A stretch of DNA of 63,950 nucleotides, filler included, from Octopus bimaculoides (Eukaryota), in NCBI RefSeq assembly GCF_001194135.2. It is 6 parts of 4 records of this genome, joined end to end, with 100 filler letters (N's around TTAATTAATTAA, not from the genome) between each part and the next. Parts side by side here need not be neighbours in the genome. Positions count along the whole stretch, not along the records: positions 1 to 12,724 come from NC_068982.1; 5 more parts are not named here. One strand, written 5' to 3'. Both the position numbers and the translations under genes were made by a program. The notes under the pieces were generated by a model. The model was given only the letters and a program-made list of their open reading frames with translations. It was not told the DNA's origin and ran no database searches. This document shows, piece by piece, positions 1-12,768 of this stretch (within the stretch, counting starts at the first letter, position 1; each line of letters opens with the position of its first letter).

Positions 1-40
<40 letters not shown>
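1..40. repeat. (CA)n microsatellite
   Basis: Perfect AC run at the window start. Confidence 0.95.
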
Positions 41-43
<3 letters not shown>

Positions 44-54
44 GTTAATTAAAA

Positions 55-300
55 AAAGAGAGAAAAGAAAAGGAAAGAAATAAAAAAACAAAAAGAGGAC
101 GTAGCACAAGCAATATATTACTATGACGCTCAGAGAAGGTAAAGAGTAATTGCTTTAGGTTTCGAGCAAAGCTCTTCTTCGGAAACAGGAAAAGCAGGGA
201 AGTCCAAATGGAAAAAGGAAGAACGAGGAAAAAATCGCCAATAATCTACGTGCGGTTACATTTCTAAAGTGACCGGAAGTAGAAGGACAAACAGAAAGCG
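55..300 (-). mobile_element. Penelope-type terminal-repeat fragment with a degenerate hammerhead motif
   Basis: Minus strand 187-151 reads TGTTT-CCGAAGA-A-GAGC-TTT-GCTC-GAAAC-C-TA-AAGCA, i.e. hammerhead order with stems I and II but an altered core. A related fragment lacking the motif lies at about 51650-51725. Confidence 0.45.
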
Positions 301-867
301 CTTTCTGGGAAGGAGAGTGTGAAGATGGTCGGTATGTGTGTGTGTGTGTGTGTGTGGAAGCGTATGTATATATGGTAGCGTGTGTGCGTGTGGTGGTAAC
401 TGTGTGTGTTTGTGGGAGCAATGTCTGTGTGTGTGTCAGTATCTGTGTGTGTGCGTGTTAATGTCGCTCTGAGAGGTTAGCAGCTATAGTGACAGGTGTG
501 TGAATGGGTGGTTGTGACAGTGTGTATGCGTGCATGTATGTATCCGTTGTGTGGCCAGTGTAGTCGCATCTGCTTCTCAAAGGAAAGGTTACTCAGCCAT
601 AAGCGCAGTCACAGAGGTGACACCGTCTACTAATGAGATGTCCAGCATGTTTTCTCGATCACCTTGTGTAGTAGAGGGTGTGGGTTAGCCAGTAGGCTCA
701 CTCTGCATTATAGGTCTCAACATTCAGATAGTCAGGCAGCTACTGGAAGGCTGATTTGGTGGTCTTACAGGCCCTCGAAGCCATATGAAATTTCATATTC
801 GGTGATGTTTTTTAGCGTGAAAAGAGTCTAAGAAGTAGTCATACTCAGTCACGAGTTGACTACCACT

Positions 868-998
868 ATGTATGTATGTATGTATGTATGTATGTATGTA
901 TGTATGTATGTATGTATGTATGTATGTATGCATGCGTGCATGTATGCCTGTATGTATGTATGTATGTATGTATGTATGTATGTATGTATGTATGTGTG
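868..998. repeat. (TATG)n microsatellite
   Basis: Tetranucleotide array flanking the 3' end of the adjacent R4/Dong fragment. Confidence 0.95.
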
Positions 999-1004
999 TA
1001 TGTG

Positions 1005-1830
1005 TCTTCTATTTTTTAGCCGGTTTCCAACAAAGATACAAGGCTCCATCTTTGGGATGTAGTTAACACGGACAAATTCACATTTGGAACTTGAGAAAAG
1101 TCTTGCATATTTTTACTGTTCCACTCACAGATTACACTTGTAATGTACGAATTAGCTGGTCGATTCTTCTTTCTGAAAATCACAATTTATCCAGATTCTC
1201 CTTTAAGCATTTACTAACAAAACCTAGTGATGCAATTATTATTGGTATGAATATGAATTCATAGTCTGGATATAGAAGCTGGAGGTTTCGAAGCAGCTGT
1301 TCATAGACATCCGCTTTTTCTTTGATTTTCAAAGAGATATTTATATCTACAGGGCGTCTGACCTCTATGATGGTACATACTTTTGTCCCTCTGACCCAAA
1401 CAACAATATCCGGCTTGTTATGCTTACATTTGACAGAAGTTTTGATGGGAATATTCCATCAGTATTCCTTGAGTTGGTGTTTATGAATGTATTCCATAAC
1501 AGGGATTTTCTAAGTTTATTTCAGGACAATCTTTTTTGCGGATGGCATTGTAAATTGTTTTAGCGACAACATCGTGCCGCATAGGAAGGTAGTACCGTGA
1601 CGACATTCAAGGGCAGCTGCTAATCATATATGTGATGTCTTCCACAGAAACATGACATAGCCTACACATGCGGTTGTACCTTGGGATTACAAGAGCGTCA
1701 TTGTCTCTCTTGTTTACCAGGTACTTTGTGGCAATCTCCTGTTCCTGGATTGCAAACGCATAGCCTTCAAAGCGAGTGCTTCCTGAGGAGGTCACTGCCA
1801 ACTAGTACAATGTTGCTCACTTCACTTTTC
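1005..1830 (-). mobile_element. R4/Dong-clade non-LTR retrotransposon, 5'-truncated 3' fragment (CCHC knuckle plus restriction-like endonuclease)
   Basis: Minus-strand translation gives CRLCHVSVEDITYMISSCP, then RHDVVAK-like, KHNKPDI (RLE PD motif) and FIPIIIG segments, with stops and frameshifts. Confidence 0.85.
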
Positions 1831-1865
1831 AGCACTGTACTTATATATTTATTTTTGCTGCTGCT

Positions 1866-1966
1866 GCATGTATGTATGTATGTATGTATGTATGTATGTA
1901 TGTATGTATGTATGTATGCATGCATGCATGCATGTATGTATGTATGTATGTACGTATGCATGTATG

Positions 1967-2000
<34 letters not shown>

Positions 2001-2022
2001 TGCATGCATGCATGTATGTATG
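1866..2022. repeat. (TATG)n microsatellite
   Basis: Array between two R4/Dong fragments. Confidence 0.95.
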
Positions 2023-2029
2023 CTTCACT

Positions 2030-2640
2030 TCTGTTTATCCTCATTTAAATTATTCCTTTGAAGAAGGAGCTGGCTTCTAACAAAGAAACAAAGCTCTATT
2101 ACTGGAATATAGATAACAAAAACAATGTCACATTTTAAACCTCAGAAAAGTCTTGCATAGTTTTACTGTTCCGCTTACAGACCGTATTTGTAATGTGCGA
2201 GTCAGTTGGGTGATTTCTTTTTCTGAAAATCCAAACTCAGCCAGACTGACAGTTGGGCATTTACTTACAAAACTAAGTGCTCCAATTGTTATTGGTATAA
2301 ATGTAAATTTGTAATCCGGATATAGAAGATGGACGTTTCGAAGCAGTTGTCCATAGTTATCTTCTTTCTCTTTGATTTTCTAGGAGATATTCACATCAGT
2401 AAGACTGCTGACCTCTATGACACTACATATTTTATTCCTGTATGTAGACCACACATCGCTGTCCTTGGAATATAGATATGAATCCATATTACCAGCGTAA
2501 TTCAAGGACTGGAAGATATATTATGAAATTAACGACAGGAATGCTGATTGCATGTATTTCATCATCAATGCGTTTGCTTCTAGTTTTTAACTGCGTAACT
2601 GACTTCAGAAAGTTGTATAATAGCATTATATCGTGACTGT
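2030..2640 (-). mobile_element. R4/Dong-clade LINE, second diverged 3' fragment
   Basis: Aligns by eye to 1005-1600 (e.g. GAAAAGTCTTGCATA.TTTTACTGTTCC and TTTCGAAGCAG.TGT.CATAG are shared). Translates to FIPIIIGAL.FVS-like RLE C-terminus. Confidence 0.75.
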
Positions 2641-2787
2641 ATAAAGAGTGGAGCGGGACATAGTTTGACGTTTATAGAGGAACTTGAATTTAAGAGTTAC
2701 TTGAGGCAAAGCCATTTAAAATTTGTTTTAGTGTGTTCTGTTGTATAATGTAGGTTAAACTTTCTTTCAATAAAAATGATTAAATAT

Positions 2788-2950
2788 AGGCACAGACGTA
2801 GCTGTGTGGTTAAGAGCTCGCTTTGAAACAACGTGGTTTCGGGTTTAGCCCTACGGTGCGGCACCTTGGGTGTATTTTACTATAGCCTCGGGCCGATAGA
2901 TGCCTTCTGAGAGAATTTGATTGACGAAAACTGTGGAAGTCCATCGTATG
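2788..2950 (+). mobile_element. tRNA-derived SINE, family A
   Basis: A/B-box-like head, GGCACCTTGGG...TACTATAGCCTCGGGCCGA body and TATG tail. Homologous to copies at 22.0, 27.4 and 47.6 kb. Confidence 0.75.
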
Positions 2951-2986
<36 letters not shown>

Positions 2987-4691
2987 TGTATATATATTTC
3001 GTGTTTTTCCATGGTCTGTTTGGAGTCTTTGTTCGTTTTTACTGCTTAACTGGTGTTTGTTGACGTTGGATGCTTTGATAGGTAACTGTCGACCAATGAA
3101 AATGAGTGCATTGTTAGATATAATTTCTTTATTTGTGAATTAAGGCTACCATTGGTTTCATGTGAAGAAACGTAGGAAATACAAATAAAGTAATTATATA
3201 TCCGCCAATGCAGTGTTGAACACTCATTTCATTGTTCGACATTTGCCAAAACTGCAACGATGATCTGGAACTCGACTGACGAAAGAAAACTCCGAATGAC
3301 CCGTCCTTGTTTTTTCTTGTCCCTTCTTGTATCATCTAACTGTCTGGGTGTTTTGTTATCGCCTCTTCCATTCTTGTCCGACTTTTTGTATTCTTTGATA
3401 TATATATNNNNNNNNNNNNNNNNNNNNNNNNNNNNNNNNNNNNNNNNNNNNNNNNNNNNNNNNNNNNNNNNNNNNNNNNNNNNNNNNNNNNNNNNNNNNN
3501 NNNNNNNNNNNNNNNNNNNNNNNNNNNNNNNNNNNNNNNNNNNNNNNNNNNNNNNNNNNNNNNNNNNNNNNNNNNNNNNNNNNNNNNNNNNNNNNNNNNN
3601 NNNNNNNNNNNNNNNNNNNNNNNNNNNNNNNNNNNNNNNNNNNNNNNNNNNNNNNNNNNNNNNNNNNNNNNNNNNNNNNNNNNNNNNNNNNNNNNNNNNN
3701 NNNNNNNNNNNNNNNNNNNNNNNNNNNNNNNNNNNNNNNNNNNNNNNNNNNNNNNNNNNNNNNNNNNNNNNNNNNNNNNNNNNNNNNNNNNNNNNNNNNN
3801 NNNNNNNNNNNNNNNNNNNNNNNNNNNNNNNNNNNNNNNNNNNNNNNNNNNNNNNNNNNNNNNNNNNNNNNNNNNNNNNNNNNNNNNNNNNNNNNNNNNN
3901 NNNNNNNNNNNNNNNNNNNNNNNNNNNNNNNNNNNNNNNNNNNNNNNNNNNNNNNNNNNNNNNNNNNNNNNNNNNNNNNNNNNNNNNNNNNNNNNNNNNN
4001 NNNNNNNNNNNNNNNNNNNNNNNNNNNNNNNNNNNNNNNNNNNNNNNNNNNNNNNNNNNNNNNNNNNNNNNNNNNNNNNNNNNNNNNNNNNNNNNNNNNN
4101 NNNNNNNNNNNNNNNNNNNNNNNNNNNNNNNNNNNNNNNNNNNNNNNNNNNNNNNNNNNNNNTATATATACATACATGAATGTATGGGTACAGGAAGTAA
4201 AAAAAACGTGAACGAAATGAGAAACGAGAAGATAAAAAACAAAAGCATGGAAAACAAACTTTTTTCGAACAACAAAAGAAACAAATAGAGAAACGTGACA
4301 GCCAACATAAAAAACATTCCCTTCGTCAGTTGTCTCCTGTTATATCTACTCTGCGTTTCGAAGGTAGGGACAAGACGCGACTTCGTTTAATCAGTCGTTC
4401 CTGCAAAGCAAATTAAATAACATTTGGGATTTTTAAAAACAGGACAGTAAGAACAAAACAGTAAAAACAAACGGTGAGGGCTGTTAAGCTATAATGAGGT
4501 AAAGTGATGAACGCAGGAAAAACGAGCTTTGAGAAGAGACAGGCAAAAGCACGTCTTGTCTTTAAGAAGGAAGTGGAAGAAAGAAAGATAAATAGCCGTT
4601 GGTCACGTGTGAGCAAGGAGAGAGTAAAGGAGGAAGAGTGCATATCATATTATCATATGATCGAATACCACGCATCCATTCCCAAGTAAGT

Positions 4692-4743
<52 letters not shown>

Positions 4744-4904
4744 TGTATGTATGTATGTATGTATGTATGCATGCATGTATGTCTGTGTATGTATGTATGT
4801 ATGTATGCATGTATGTGTGTATGTATGTATGTATGTATGCATGTATGTGTGTATGTACGTATTATGTTTGTATGTATGCATGTGAGTGTGTGTGTATGTG
4901 TATT

Positions 4905-5040
4905 CCACCACCGCTTTACAATCAGCGTTGGCTCATGTCCCCATAACTTAGTCGTTCGACACAAGTTAGACTAAATACCGAACTTTAGAAAGTACACAAG
5001 TACTGGGATCGATTTATTCGACTAAGCCCAATGACTGCAG
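4905..5040 (-). mobile_element. Interspersed repeat, family C fragment
   Basis: Reverse-complement similarity to 31640-31845 and 37010-37160. Confidence 0.5.
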
Positions 5041-5429
5041 GAAGTATGCGGTAAAATAAAAGAACATAAACAAATACTATGAAAGAATTGTCGAAAGAAG
5101 CTAAGTTATGAGTAACTGAACGCAACATAAATATATTATTGAATGAATATAAGCTGTAAATAAACAGACTAGGTTAGTTGTGGTCATACTGGATCGGTAG
5201 GAGGTGGATTGTGGCTTATGGAAAACTCTTATAAAAAGGTTAAAAGATGTACAATAAGATACCATAAGATCGCAAATGTCACGTTAACAAACCTGAGATG
5301 TATAAAATGCAGCTTTAGGAGATTAAATACCTTAAGAACAGAACTAAAAAGCATTGTTATTTTACAGCATAGTTATTTTACAGCATAGTTATTTGCTGTT
5401 TGGGGTGGGACAGTTGTGGAAATGACACT

Positions 5430-5917
5430 GCGCATCTGAGTGTGTGTGTATCTGTGTGTGTTTTATATGTGTATGTGTGTGTTTATCTGTGGGGGTGTGC
5501 GTGTGTGCGTGTGTGTGTATGTGCATGTGTGTGTTGTATCTTTTTTATATGTGCATGTGTGTGTATATATGTGAGTGTATGTGTATCTGTGCGCGTGTAT
5601 GAATTTTATGCGTGCATATGAGTGTATATCTGTGAGTGTGTGTGTGTCTGTGTGCGCGTGTATGTATTTTATTCGAGCATGTATGTGTATATCTGTGAGT
5701 GTGTGTGTGCGCGTATGTATTTTATATGTGCATGTGTGTGTATATTTGTGAGTGTGCATGTGTGTGTGTATGTGTGTTCGTTTTGTGCTTTATATGTGCA
5801 TGTGTGTATATATATCTATGAGTGTGTACGCGTGTGTGTATATGTGTTTTCGTGCATGTTTGTGCGTATGTATATGTGTGAGTGCGTGTGCGTCTGTGTG
5901 TGTGTGTGTGTGTGCGT

Positions 5918-6001
<84 letters not shown>
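5430..6001. repeat. Degenerate TG-rich compound satellite ending in (GA)n
   Basis: Recurring roughly 60-bp TATGTGCATGTGTGTG... blocks, then a pure AG run. Confidence 0.85.
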
Positions 6002-6006
<5 letters not shown>

Positions 6007-6130
6007 CGAAAATAGTTGGGACAGAATGTAAAGTAGTAAATCAATAATAATAAAGGATGAAAGGTAAACATAGAAAGAGAACAACGAATTGAAGATAAAA
6101 AGAAACAGCTCAGAGGTCAAGCAGCAACGT

Positions 6131-6153
6131 TAGTAGTGGTAGTAGTAGTAGTT

Positions 6154-6214
<61 letters not shown>

Positions 6215-6228
6215 TGGTAGTGGTGGTG

Positions 6229-6277
<49 letters not shown>

Positions 6278-6710
6278 TAGTAGTAGTGGTAGTGGTAGTG
6301 GTAGTGNNNNNNNNNNNNNNNNNNNNNNNNNNNNNNNNNNNNNNNNNNNNNNNNNNNNNNNNNNNNNNNNNNNNNNNNNNNNNNNNNNNNNNNNNNNNNN
6401 NNNNNNNNNNNNNNNNNNNNNNNNNNNNNNNNNNNNNNNNNNNNNNNNNNNNNNNNNNNNNNNNNNNNNNNNNNNNNNNNNNNNNNNNNNNNNNNNNNNN
6501 NNNNNNNNNNNNNNNNNNNNNNNNNNNNNNNNNNNNNNNNNNNNNNNNNNNNNNNNNNNNNNNNNNNNNNNNNNNNNNNNNNNNNNNNNNNNNNNNNNNN
6601 NNNNNNNNNNNNNNNNNNNNNNNNNNNNNNNNNNNNNNNNNNNNNNNNNNNNNNNNNNNNNNNNNNNNNNNNNNNNNNNNNNNNNNNNNNNNNNNNNNNN
6701 NNNNNNNNNN

Positions 6711-6755
<45 letters not shown>

Positions 6756-6777
6756 AGAAGAAGAAGAAGAAGAAGAA
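6131..6777. repeat. (TAG)n/(TGG)n/(AAG)n microsatellite spanning an N gap
   Basis: Direct sequence. It explains the poly-V/poly-Y ORFs in the track. Confidence 0.9.
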
Positions 6778-7020
6778 TGTAACTGTCATCTGAATAGTTG
6801 GTGCATTAACAACCAAATTTGAGAAATTGGGATTGACATGAAGGTAGAACATGCTAAAAAAAACTGCTTTATTTGAGACAGCGAGGATTTTGAGATTGGC
6901 ACGTGGGTGTTAAACATCGTGGAAAGAGACCCTGTGAGATCCTTGACAACAGGTTGTTGTCTGCTCTTGCAGAATTAACCGGAGCTAGTGAAGTCGAGAG
7001 CTCTGAGAAGTGAAATGGAC
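6778..7020 (+). mobile_element. R4/Dong-clade LINE, C-terminal end and 3' UTR
   Basis: Translates to IVGAL...FEKLG(I)DMKVEHA.KTALFETARILRL, resembling the conserved R4 terminus ..LLGTARILR. Confidence 0.6.
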
Positions 7021-7425
7021 GCCTATGAATGATAGATTATAAGAAAGCCTATGACATGATTCCACACTCATGCATAAGTGCATTTTGGAGTATATTCAGT
7101 ATTGCAGACAACGAAAGAGATTTAATTAGCTGTAGCATGAAGAAATGGAAAGTAGATTTGTATTCAGGTTACACAGCCTCAGGGAAAGATAATATTAAGA
7201 AACGAGTTTTCCAAGGATATTCGTTATCCCCTTTAATATTTGTGATTTGCTTAATCCTCCTCAGTTTAGTTTTAAGAAAGGCAAAAGTAGAGTATCTGTT
7301 CAGAGATAATAAGAGGAAAATTAGCCATTTGCTTTAAATGGCTGATCTGAAGCCTTTTAGTAAGAATGAAAAAGAGATAGATTCCTTAATACAAAGTGTA
7401 AGACTCTTCTGCAAAAATATAGGGA
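7020..7425 (+). mobile_element. R4/Dong-clade reverse transcriptase fragment
   Basis: ORF 7029-7337 contains IDYKKAYDMIPHS and FQGYSLSPLIF, followed by ISHLL*MADLK (decayed F/YMDD). Confidence 0.85.
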
Positions 7426-7689
7426 TCTTAATAATACTAAAACTCTAGAGATGTTTGTGTGTACCCGAAATATTTCAGAAATAGTAGATCTTATCTCCTA
7501 CCACGTAACAGCTATTTGCGATAAAGGAACCGAAATGCCTGTTACGTGGGAGCGTGATTTCGTTGTCACATTCATTGAAAGCATGCAAAATAACCAGGAA
7601 AAGATTTTAAAAAAAAACCCTACGAAACAAAACTCCGTTGCTGGGAAACTCAGACTTTCTAGGCGACCCAACGGGTCACGGGTAGTCTA

Positions 7690-7690
<1 letters not shown>
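7426..7690 (+). mobile_element. Short non-autonomous Helitron
   Basis: 5' A|TC(TTAATAATACTAAA), 3' hairpin GACCC-AAC-GGGTC followed by CTAG|T. Inserted between A7425 and T7691 with no TSD. Confidence 0.7.
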
Positions 7691-7731
<41 letters not shown>

Positions 7732-8298
7732 AAAGTTTAGGTTAACTCAAATATGTTTGTGACATATTTTAACTTCTAAAGGCGACTTTACTGCAGTTTA
7801 CCATAGAGAAAAATCTCTCGCGTACGGCAAGAGTGTAAACAGAACATTGCCAGCTAAGTGGCACCCTCTATCGAGTCCCTATGTGCATTTCTTGCTGGTT
7901 GTACTTTTTTTTTTTTAGTAGGGAATACCAAAGAGAGACAAACCTGAGTTGATTAGAAAGCCGTAGCTGTCAGTCAATACGATTTGCGCTCGCAGATTAC
8001 CCGGCCAAGATAAATGCATATGCATAAGTGTACAGCAGAAATGAGAAATGAGCAAACTTTGGATTTCTTCAGATATGCTTGTGTCATATTTTAACTACTA
8101 AAGATCTGCTGTATAATCCTGTGTGGGCTTAGGAGGAATCCAGTGGTGGTCTGGAGGGCGGAATACTCAAAGGTTGCCCTGAGTGGCACACACACACACA
8201 CACACACTAGCAACGCCAGGATGGAAATTTGTCCGTCCCTTTTCAATCTCCACAGTCCTACCGCCAATGAGAAACAGTCACACGCATACACACACACA

Positions 8299-8330
<32 letters not shown>

Positions 8331-8921
8331 TACACACACACTACACGCATACATAATTGTTTATTTTAAAGGCTTGTGTACAAATGTTCACTTTAAACTT
8401 GCATCGAATATATGACTCAGCAGTGATTAGTAGAATCCAAATAATGCGTATTGTTAATAGTAGCGACTATTTACTCTGACTTTTCGCCGATACTGGTTTC
8501 TTAGAACAATGTTTTGAAAAGGTCGAATCGGCGTCGCTTTGTAAAAAATCGCTTTTTACCTGTTTCTTTCTGGTAAATATCACATATGTATATGAATAGA
8601 TTGACATGTTTGAATTTGTCTATGTTACTCAAATGAATGCCAACCACTTGGAGTTATCTCCTTTAGAGCATTTTTGTTTAAAAAGTTCCTGGCTTTGGAT
8701 AAATGAAAATACAGGAGGATCAGTTAATTATGATTTTATTCAACATATTCTCTTCCCAGATTCACACACTTATTGCAGGTGTCCCTCAATTTTTCTAAGC
8801 CCTGTAAAAGAGCTCGGAATGTTGGGCTTCCAGCCGGCATTTCATAATACCCTTCAAGCTAGGAACTTTTCAGCACCCCATCATGTGTGTGTGTGTGTCT
8901 GTGTGTGTGTGTAAGATTTAA

Positions 8922-9228
8922 GGGGTGGAGCAGATGAAATCCGGGCTACATACGTTTCATAGCGAGCCGAACCTCGGAAGTGGTAAATATCTAAGCGAGG
9001 TGTATACCACTAGCTTCTCTTCAGGCCAAGAGTATCTTGATTAAATGAAGTTTATATTGTCTTTAGGAGGCATTCGATCGAACTTTCTGCGTGTTAACAT
9101 GTGCATCTCAACGACAATATAAACTTCATTTAATCATGACACCCTTACACCTCACTTGGATGTTTCCTACTTCCAAGGTTCCGCTCTTTATGAAACATAT
9201 GTAGCCCGGATTTTACCTATTCCATTCC
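8922..9228. mobile_element. MITE with TTAA target duplication and GG...CC termini (Kolobok-like)
   Basis: TTAA at 8918-8921 and 9229-9232. Imperfect 41-bp TIRs (33/41 identical) share AAATCCGGGCTACATA.GTTTCATA. Confidence 0.6.
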
Positions 9229-9434
9229 TTAACTCATAGATTTTTATTGGTATACCTGGAAATCCTGGTTGCTTACCGTGAAATATGAAATAATTTTTTC
9301 GGCTTATCGTACTTCGATAAGGAAAAAATCCACAACATTCCACACCAATAAATCATTATTTTTCCTGAAAGTTGCTTTTTATATTTTCTACAGATTGTTT
9401 GAAGCTCGCGTTCTTCCTATGCCTCGATCCTTGG

Positions 9435-9600
<166 letters not shown>

Positions 9601-9871
9601 ACATATGTGTTTGTGTGTCTATGCATCTATCATGTATGTATATGTGTGCATGTGTATATATATTAGTTTATATGTATATGTTTGTGTGCGTGTGTATATG
9701 TATGCGAGTTATGTATGAATATACGTATGCATGTATATGTATACGTGGAGAGCGAGAGAGAGAGAGAGAAAGAGAGAGACGCACATATAGACAGAGATAG
9801 AAAGAGAGATAGAGTGCTACGATTGTACTAAAAATACAAATGTGTTTTATTTTTATAGTTCATCACGGTTT

Positions 9872-10062
9872 AAGATGGCTGACAGAATCGTTAGCGCACC
9901 GGGCAAAATGTTTGTAGTAATTTTCTCGTCTTTACGTTCTGAGTTCATATTGCACAGAGGACGACTTTATCTTTCATCCCTCTCGGGAATCGATGAGATA
10001 AGTACCACGAGCAGCCACCTCCCCAAAAATTCAAGGCCTTATCCCTATAGTAGAAAGAATAT
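9872..10062 (+). mobile_element. SINE, family B (GGCAGAA.CGTTAGC...TTTCATCC...GTCGAT...AAGTACC)
   Basis: Homologous to copies at 35.9, 45.1, 47.9 and 48.3 kb. Confidence 0.7.
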
Positions 10063-10439
10063 ATTTTNNNNNNNNNNNNNNNNNNNNNNNNNNNNNNNNN
10101 NNNNNNNNNNNNNNNNNNNNNNNNNNNNNNNNNNNNNNNNNNNNNNNNNNNNNNNNNNNNNNNNNNNNNNNNNNNNNNNNNNNNNNNNNNNNNNNNNNNN
10201 NNNNNNNNNNNNNNNNNNNNNNNNNNNNNNNNNNNNNNNNNNNNNNNNNNNNNNNNNNNNNNNNNNNNNNNNNNNNNNNNNNNNNNNNNNNNNNNNNNNN
10301 NNNNNNNNNNNNNNNNNNNNNNNNNNNNNNNNNNNNNNNNNNNNNNNNNNNNNNNNNNNNNNNNNNNNNNNNNNNNNNNNNNNNNNNNNNNNNNNNNNNN
10401 NNNNNNNNNNNNNNNNNNNNNNNNNNNNNNNNNNNNNNN

Positions 10440-10680
10440 CAGGATAACTGCCACCCGTTTGAGAAATGAGCCCCGCAAAATGGAGTGACAGCAGCAACGA
10501 GTGTCGCTAGCCATTCTCCGTGATGACGCCATCGTGGTAATGTTTGCAGGGCGATATTGTACACGGTACTCCCTGCCCATTTTGTGTTGTTTAATTTCCC
10601 CCCTTTTTTTTTTCTTTTCTTTGTTTCCTTGTAATTGAATTATGATTCAATATTTACGTAAATAAAATTAGCATTTAAAG
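10440..10680 (+). mobile_element. Possible L1/Tx1-type LINE 3' end
   Basis: GC-rich coding-like stretch (RLRNEPRKME) followed by a T-rich UTR and AATAAA. Resembles the 3' end of the 13.3-14.85 kb element. Confidence 0.3.
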
Positions 10681-10888
10681 TGCCGGGTTATTGTGATTAA
10701 TGCTGATACTATTGCCGGATTTAGAATTTTGTTGTCGCTCGATTTATGTCGATGTTTATTTTTATTTGTGACTAATGTATGTTATCGGTGTGAGCATATC
10801 GGAGTTCGTTTAGCCTTGTACTGTATTATGACTATGGATGTCATTAATCAGCTCATTTATTTATTCATTTATTTTAGAAGAATTCTGT

Positions 10889-11585
10889 TGTAGTGGCGCG
10901 AAATTATGGCCGCCATTAAGGAAGTACAATCTACGCATGCTCAAGGGACTTGCCTTCCCGGAAGCCCCTCGAGTGTGCATGCGTAGTAAAACCAGTACTT
11001 AAAGCGCTTCGCGCGCTTTTTATAGCGCGATGCTTTCGACATGACCACTATTTGCTCCTTTAGCATGCCTCAACGAAGCTCTTAATATCCAGATGCCGAT
11101 AACAAGCTAACCAGCGGCTGCTAAGCTGAATGACACTTGACTTGTGCCGCTGGAATATTATTTTCCATGTGCATTGTATTACATTGTTGGGTATTTCCAT
11201 TCTCTGTATTAACAGATTGTTTCATTTTCATTGTATATCTACAGCCGCATCATGTTTCAGGCGCCCACTACAATCCTTTCCTTGCTCGTGCTACGTACTC
11301 GGTGGTGGTGGTGGTGGTGGGGGGAGCCATTGTAGTGGCGCGAAATTATGGCCGCCATTAAGGAAGTACAATCTACACATGTGCAAGGGACTTGCCTTCC
11401 CGGAAGCCCCTCGAGTACGCATGCGTAGTAAACCAGTACTTAAAGCGCTTCGCGCGCTTTCCAAGCCTCTTTAGCGCGATGCTTTCGAAGTGATAACTAC
11501 TTGCTCCTTTAGCATGCCTCAACGAAGCTCTTAATATCCAGATGCCGACTGCAAGCCAACCAGCGGCTGCTAAGCTGAATGACAC
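10889..11585 (-). mobile_element. Miniature LTR retrotransposon (TRIM-like): truncated 5' LTR 11331-11585, PBS 11321-11329, PPT 11273-11283, complete 3' LTR 10889-11272
   Basis: Two roughly 250-bp direct repeats, about 90% identical. The full LTR has inverted ends TGTAGTGG...CCACTACA. On the minus strand TGGCTCCCC follows LTR1 and AAGGAAAGGAT precedes LTR2. The internal region is 58 bp. Confidence 0.8.
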
Positions 11586-11999
11586 AAGATTTGTAAAACC
11601 AAGCATCACCAAAATAAAACTTATTTTTATTATGTTGTTAATTGTTCTACTGTTTCTTAATATATATTTTTGTTGAAAGGTGATAGAGAGAGGCTAAAGT
11701 CTCTATTGCTACTATCAACCTTTTACACTGTATTGTTTGTTAACGTTTTCCTATCTAGTTTGGTTTTATGTATCATATTGCAATCGCTCTTTGCTGTTAG
11801 TACGGGTGAGCGTTGTACTTATATGGTCTGTATCACAATTAGTATTCCACATTTTACAACTTTGACGTCTGTAATTAAATTTATACACATCGATTATAAG
11901 TAGCTTGTAAGTGGCTTTAGAGTTCTCTGGTTTGTTATTGATAAGAAGTTTATTTATTTAGAGTTTCGTGGTCGTAAATGCGGGAACGAAATCTGCTTA

Positions 12000-12520
12000 G
12001 TGGGTGCATTCCCAGGTCCAATTTATATATGTACATGAACCAAATCAGATAGATCCAATAATGGAAAAATAATGTTTCAAATCAGTCCAAAAATGTTTTT
12101 ACACTCGTTAGTTTTGGCGATGAAGTTATTCAGGAGAATGTTTTAAGCGTTTCCATTGCCCCACCAATAGGATTGCACTTCCTGTTCCCGAGCCTATAGT
12201 TGTGGTGTATTTTTAGTGTGTATGTTTCAATGAACTTTTTTTCATTTGCTGGATCTGGAAGAAGGAGTTATAATGCCCATATCCTTTGCAATCCCTCGAA
12301 TATTGGTGAGAGTGATGCCATTCGTGTTTCTCTTGAACCTTTGTAAATCAGCATCCGCGGGAAAGATAGAAGTAGGGAGAGAGAATTCCAGAGAGCCTAT
12401 GTTTTGGGAAAGAAGGACTGGGTATAGTGATTAGTGCAGGGCCTCGGGATTAGATATATATATTACGGATAATGAGAGGAGGAGAGGCGAATGGGTTCAG
12501 GTATCCCTGTGTGGATGCGG
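12000..12520 (-). mobile_element. Degraded LINE fragments (WNSLP-like C-terminus and possible APE start)
   Basis: Minus strand LEFSLPTSIFPADADLQRFKR resembles a CR1/Jockey-type C-terminus. TNIRGI...ET resembles an endonuclease N-terminus. Confidence 0.3.
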
Positions 12521-12605
12521 CATGAGCCCAGCCAGCTTCGGAAAGCAGAGACCATTACAGACAGTAGTGGTAGATAAAACACTATGTGCGCGCGTGCGTG
12601 TGTGC

Positions 12606-12673
<68 letters not shown>

Positions 12674-12768
12674 GACAGACAGGAGAGACAGAAAAAGAGA
12701 GTGCTTGCGGGCAGAGGCTAGAGTNNNNNNNNNNNNNNNNNNNNNNNNNNNNNNNNNNNNNNNNNNNN

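Follow-up and report, generated by a model that had tools for sequence, protein, structure and literature searches.

In a stretch of the Octopus bimaculoides genome (RefSeq assembly GCF_001194135.2), two imperfect direct repeats are separated by only 58 bp. Are they a retroelement's long terminal repeats (LTRs), and was so short a form itself a transposing unit, or is it what was left when a longer element lost its interior? The window analyzed here is the whole stretch of 63,950 nucleotides, filler included, of which positions 1 to 12,724 come from NC_068982.1. A preliminary description of this DNA had proposed a miniature LTR retroelement (TRIM) with a tRNA-Asp primer site, mobilized by a gypsy partner. 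I re-examined the locus signal by signal and weighed this proposal against its alternatives.

Results

Delimitation of the LTRs

The direct repeat spans 10889-11594. Copy A occupies 10889-11145 and extends unpaired to 11272, and copy B occupies 11331-11594. The two are identical at 238 of the 255 aligned positions (93.3%, or 89.5% with gaps counted), and their alignment contains one 9-bp indel and two 1-bp indels. The second copy had been described as 255 bp long; it is indeed real and 93% identical to the first, but its length is 264 bp, with the similarity ending at 11594 and not at 11585. The DNA past 11594 is unrelated to the LTR.

Where does the complete unit end? It was found that the 8-mer TGTAGTGG occurs three times on both strands of the whole window (expected count, 0.56): at 10889 (+), at 11331 (+), and in inverted form at 11265-11272, which is the sole inverted occurrence. 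The segment 10889-11272 is a 384-bp unit that has TG...CA ends and carries a terminal inverted repeat of 8 nt, and the start of the direct repeat coincides exactly with the TG of the inverted terminus. In a first-order Markov simulation, the probability of an 8-nt terminal inverted repeat inside one unit was 0.0074. The 384-bp LTR with inverted ends that had been claimed is thus confirmed by the inverted 8-mer. Read on the minus strand, the complete 3′ LTR (TGTAGTGG...CCACTACA) lies at 10889-11272, while the truncated 5′ LTR lies at 11331-11594, as aligned to 10889-11145, and ends with ...CCACTACA at 11338-11331. The complete copy has both the TGTAGTGG and the CCACTACA ends, while copy B retains the CA end only. 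Since copy B breaks off before that point, the length of 384 bp is based on the inverted 8-mer and the adjoining polypurine tract (PPT), not on the similarity between the copies, and the full LTR length is defined from a single copy. A shorter LTR of 257-264 bp with a 185-bp interior was considered and rejected; it has non-TG ends, no adjoining PPT and no target-site duplication (TSD), and it leaves the inverted 8-mer unexplained.

Primer site, microsatellite, and polypurine tract

The interior (11273-11330) is 58 bp long and reads, in minus-strand order, A, TGGCTCCCC, (CCA)n, 17 nucleotides, AAGGAAAGGA, and T. The single A at 11330 separates the 5′ LTR from the primer binding site TGGCTCCCC (11321-11329), which is the complement of the final 9 nt of tRNA-Asp (GGGGAGCCA). 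Directly after the primer site comes a (CCA)n microsatellite (11301-11320) of 20 nt or 6.7 units, for which Tandem Repeats Finder gave a period of 3 and 100% matches. A unique 17-nt spacer, GAGTACGTAGCACGAGC (11284-11300), leads to the PPT AAGGAAAGGA (11274-11283), and a single T at 11273 stands between the PPT and the TG of the 3′ LTR. All of these features are on the minus strand.

The string TGGCTCCCC occurs once in the window (0.01 occurrences expected over 25 kb of both strands), one base past where the 5′ LTR ends. Among eukaryotic cytosolic tRNAs, no isoacceptor besides tRNA-Asp is known to have a 3′ end of GAGCCA. The comparison was made with the tRNA-Asp 3′ end ...CCCCGACGGGGAGCCA as printed in PMC5699543. 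The complementarity is exactly 9 nt long, position 10 being mismatched and the (CCA)n run coming next, and the compared tRNA is mammalian and may differ from that of the host. As for the PPT, only two pyrimidine runs of at least 10 nt exist on the plus strand of the 2.1-kb block around the element, and the PPT is one of them; the probability of a purine run of at least 10 nt ending within 0-2 nt of a fixed site is 0.0012. Thus, a tRNA-Asp-complementary primer site one base after the 5′ LTR, a PPT directly before the 3′ LTR (with one T between), and a 58-bp interior holding little beyond these two and the (CCA)n run, all noted in the preliminary description, were found to be as claimed.

Orientation, putative promoter, and hairpin

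The primer site and the PPT bear out the minus-strand orientation assigned earlier. Two signals that had not been cited then, a TATA box and a hairpin, agree with it. A TATAAAAA box lies at 11017-11024 on the minus strand (LTR positions 249-256) as a putative promoter at the end of U3. A 79-nt hairpin, the putative start of R/U5, was predicted at 10922-11000 on the same strand, with a folding energy of -38.9 kcal/mol alone; it begins about 25 nt downstream of the first T in the TATAAAAA box. The 112-nt R/U5 stretch from the hairpin start to the LTR end gave z = -5.0, and none of 200 shuffled sequences folded as well. Copy B is predicted to form the same hairpin (-32.6 kcal/mol), although five substitutions fall inside it. 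The change in the 3′ arm costs 6.4 kcal/mol by itself, of which the paired change in the 5′ arm restores 1.6 kcal/mol, a weak compensatory change that, from two sequences, proves nothing. A TATA box followed by a hairpin is the layout expected of a U3 promoter and a structured R/U5, which these two features putatively represent. Neither an AATAAA nor an ATTAAA signal was found in the LTR. An element on the plus strand was rejected, as no TGG follows the first repeat on that strand.

Decay of the copy

The 5′ LTR (copy B) is missing ~127 nt from the start of U3, and the 9-bp indel has broken up its TATA region, with TAAAGAGGCTTGGAAA in place of TATAAAAA. A blastn search found no match to 11146-11272 elsewhere in the window, including the 1.1 kb remaining to the right. 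Since the 5′ LTR is without ~127 nt of U3 and without a TATA box, and since the LTRs differ by 7%, the copy cannot move; it is a dead remnant. The truncation of the 5′ LTR also took away the upstream junction, so that a target-site duplication of 4-6 bp is no longer readable. As they stand on the minus strand, the flank after the 3′ LTR (ACAGA...) and the one before the truncated LTR (...GGTTTT) do not match.

The divergence between the LTRs corresponds to a Kimura two-parameter (K2P) distance of 0.070. The 17 substitutions are clustered, forming seven adjacent pairs where 1.06 are expected (P about 1e-5), and several are dinucleotide or trinucleotide replacements. Since they are not independent point mutations, no age was derived from the divergence. 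The clustering could stem from gene conversion, from multi-nucleotide mutation, or from recombination between different family members.

Coding content and excluded element classes

No remnant of gag, pol, or integrase was found beside the element, and no Pfam domain was detected in the six frames of 10441-12724. An Rfam scan (E <= 1) of 10889-11594 gave no hammerhead ribozyme, 5S rRNA, or tRNA-like element, and ARAGORN predicted no tRNA gene in the window. A retrozyme was ruled out by the lack of a hammerhead ribozyme in the LTRs, and a Cassandra-type TRIM by the lack of 5S rRNA-derived or tRNA-like sequence in them.

Search for relatives

Does the element have relatives? A sensitive blastn search of the window returned the two known copies and (GGT)n noise at 6208-6245, and neither a second element nor a solo LTR or full-length relative. 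Four conserved LTR segments, the junction of the LTR end and the primer site among them, were searched as exact 20-24-mers, which occurred in none of the viral contigs and in none of the prokaryote genome contigs. A scan of metagenome contigs with the LTR segments gave two matches, both of which are bare 20-21-mer chance matches in contigs of 56-61% GC. No relative was revealed by protein searches with two LTR reading frames or by one exact-sequence look-up, and a literature search for the primer-site string found nothing relevant.

The only reverse-transcriptase fragment in the window lies at about 7029-7450 (+), in the frame of 6762. It is degenerate (MIDYKKAYDMIPHS...FQGYSLSPLIF...), with stop codons within. 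Its best relatives are 49% identical proteins with an RVT_1 domain only. The contigs of these relatives (ENA ERZ25066843) are rich in transposable elements and animal-like, and a neighboring gene on one of them has Exo_endo_phos domains. These contigs, which belong to a different organism, have a 43-bp reverse-transcriptase motif in common with the window and nothing else, and none matches the LTR. Judged by the domains of these relatives and of the neighboring gene, the fragment is LINE-like and not part of an LTR element, and I read it as a LINE remnant unrelated to the element studied here.

Setting of the element

The surrounding DNA is rich in other repeats. N runs lie at 3408-4162, 6307-6710, and 10068-10439. 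The microsatellite load is very high, perfect repeats making up at least 10.8% of the non-N bases, including (TATG)n, (GA)n, (GTA)n, (CA)n, and (GACA)n. The Rfam matches in the window (mir-297, mir-3149, sno_ZL1, and others) are all below gathering scores and were treated as artefacts; those compared with the repeat coordinates sit on microsatellites. A repeat with a spacing of ~1050 bp lies at 809-3010; its 300-nt blocks 1018-1317 and 2068-2367 share 76% identity, and (TATG)n arrays occupy 809-1083, 1817-2047, and 2935-3010. It resembles a tandem duplication with a long period, seeded by microsatellites. An inverted repeat with 93-nt arms (8912-9004 and 9146-9238), 81% complementary and 141 nt apart, may represent a MITE-like or foldback element. 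There is also a family of TG-rich repeats of ~103 nt, with six overlapping copies in 5423-5784, whose starts are 8-135 nt apart, and a weaker copy at 9600-9702.

Discussion

Origin of the short form

Could the locus be an ordinary segmental or tandem duplication whose LTR-like motifs are coincidental? Formally, a 442-bp unit in about 1.6 copies is a partial tandem repeat. However, the start of the repeat falls exactly on the TG of the inverted terminus, the primer-site 9-mer sits one base from the repeat edge, and the TATA box and the hairpin have the same orientation. When the chances given above are multiplied (0.0074, 0.0012, and the 0.01 expected for the primer-site 9-mer), the product is well below 1e-6, and such a coincidence is scarcely credible. 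Since the combined chance estimates are this low and the signals agree on the minus strand, it is secure that the segment from 11594 to 10889 on the minus strand derives from an LTR retroelement. An artefact, in which a repeated LTR element was collapsed or mis-joined in the draft, is very improbable. The window comes from a draft that is gapped and rich in microsatellites, its own three N runs measuring 372-755 bp, and an assembler could be misled by the (CCA)n run in the interior. Nevertheless, the element lies inside a contiguous 2.3-kb block without N, its LTR copies differ at 7% of sites and have, as read from the alignment, a longest identical stretch of ~48 bp, so that they are not easily confused, and a mis-join via 20 nt of (CCA)n would call for a very small k-mer.

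The alternative that calls for the closest attention is a one-off derivative of a full-length LTR retrotransposon, which lost its gag-pol interior at this locus, by illegitimate recombination once inserted or by a template switch of the reverse transcriptase in one replication event, without any short family. A single copy was seen, with none elsewhere in the window or in the viral, metagenome, and prokaryote contigs; this copy is otherwise rearranged, as the truncation of the 5′ LTR and the 9-bp indel attest; an LTR of 384 bp is what autonomous elements typically have; and the putative deletion junction has a (CCA)n run, a kind of repeat that favors slippage or template switching. On the other hand, no trace of coding sequence is left (no Pfam domain in 10441-12724), and deletions that spare the 9-nt primer site and the 10-nt PPT alone are a small fraction of those possible. 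I therefore hold a one-off derivative to be unlikely, though a serious candidate. Since a multi-kilobase deletion sparing both the primer site and the PPT is a priori rare, mobilization in trans is favored; a primer site and a PPT spared with the rest lost are exactly what selection for trans-mobilization leaves. I lean, with modest confidence, towards the reading that the short form itself was the transposing unit, a TRIM-type non-autonomous element primed by tRNA-Asp and mobilized in trans.

This TRIM reading agrees in part with the preliminary description. TRIMs are typically 0.5-1 kb in size, and an intact element would have measured 826 bp (384-bp LTR, 58 bp, and 384-bp LTR). The small size and the non-coding interior, with a primer site and a PPT and no Pfam domain, speak for it; the LTR of 384 bp speaks against it, being longer than the 100-250 bp usually quoted for TRIM LTRs (PMC6934838). 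The gypsy partner proposed earlier has no specific support. Elements of the gypsy, copia, and BEL superfamilies share TG...CA ends and a tRNA primer site, and the length of the TSD cannot be read; nothing in the sequence separates these three.

Proposed mode of mobilization

From the anatomy and its statistical significance, I infer transcription, trans-mobilization, and a short form that was itself the transposing unit, along the following lines. RNA polymerase II would start at the foot of the hairpin, some 25 nt downstream of the U3 TATAAAAA box. The resulting short R-U5-PBS-PPT-U3-R transcript may have been packaged in the particles of an autonomous LTR retrotransposon. Plus-strand DNA would be primed by AAGGAAAGGA, and the TGTAGTGG/CCACTACA ends would be recognized by the integrase of the partner. 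Since the interior consists of the primer site, the microsatellite, 17 nt, and the PPT only, any packaging signal would have to lie in the LTR, where the hairpin is the obvious candidate.

Was there a whole family of such elements? It is possible that the copy belongs to an amplified animal TRIM family, tRNA-Asp-primed, with a 58-bp interior among the shortest in animals and with its packaging and dimerization signals all in the LTR, the 79-nt hairpin being the candidate; I put this forward tentatively and with less than even confidence. Against the TRIM reading as such stand the single copy, which alone defines the full LTR length, the unreadable TSD, a match of only 9 nt between the primer site and a tRNA-Asp of mammals, an LTR as long as 384 bp, and the lack of AATAAA or ATTAAA.

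Comparison with known elements

The biv-TRIM of bivalves (Satovic et al. 2019, PMC6934838) is likewise an animal TRIM with two direct terminal repeats and a very short non-coding interior that ends in a short PPT. Its terminal repeats are 202-218 bp, its interior is 77-80 bp with a 7-bp PPT, and it occurs also as solo repeats and in tandem forms (PMC6934838). Compared by description only, biv-TRIM has no recognizable tRNA primer site, in contrast to the clear 9-nt tRNA-Asp site found here, and its dimensions differ from the 384-bp LTR and the 58-bp interior of the octopus element. The ta-TRIM of taeniid cestodes (Koziol et al. 2015, PMC4558846) resembles the octopus element in its TG...CA LTRs, in a primer site close to the LTR that is complementary to a tRNA 3′ end over only nine bases, and in a PPT lying shortly before the 3′ LTR. 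It differs in its use of tRNA-Leu, its 198-bp LTRs, and its interior of ~590 bp, and it has a candidate partner, lennie, with common LTR ends, primer site, and 4-bp TSD; many of its copies are degenerate, solo, or tandem (PMC4558846).

In ants, PbTRIM (Zhou and Cahan 2012, PMC3532108) is an animal TRIM of 480-781 bp whose non-coding interior also has a primer site and a PPT. However, it is primed by tRNA-Leu through a site of ~15 nt and has LTRs of 152-184 bp, and 4-bp TSDs were reported on 67 complete copies and 159 solo LTRs, as against the one truncated copy here, for which no TSD is readable. Plant TRIMs and SMART elements (Gao et al. 2016, PMC4717578) are miniature LTR elements as well, some of them ~280 bp in total; they are often tandemly arrayed and apparently arose from larger LTR retrotransposons via loss of the interior (PMC4717578). 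Plant TRIMs typically have a tRNA-Met site and 5-bp TSDs (summarized in PMC3532108), in contrast to the match to an animal-type tRNA-Asp end here. Priming of the minus strand by tRNA-Asp, from a site a few bases after the LTR, is found in Diaspora and Calypso, Ty3/gypsy elements of soybean (PMC1142308). These are, however, plant elements of large size, autonomous or nearly so, and their primer site matches the soybean tRNA-Asp over 18 nt. The short primer site, the tiny interior, the small total size, and the priming by tRNA-Asp thus each have a precedent among these elements. In short, animal TRIMs, 9-nt primer sites, and interiors of less than 80 bp have all been published already, and the type of element is known.

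Significance

As a single dead copy, the element has value for repeat annotation only; it should be masked as an LTR-element remnant and not taken for a gene or a regulatory feature. If it belongs to a multi-copy family, it would be one more animal TRIM beside those of ants, taeniid cestodes, and bivalves. Such a family would show how little interior the machinery of a partner needs and would suggest the LTR hairpin as packaging signal. If this is true, the element would offer a natural, minimal substrate with which to establish what the RNA of an LTR retrotransposon requires for mobilization in trans.
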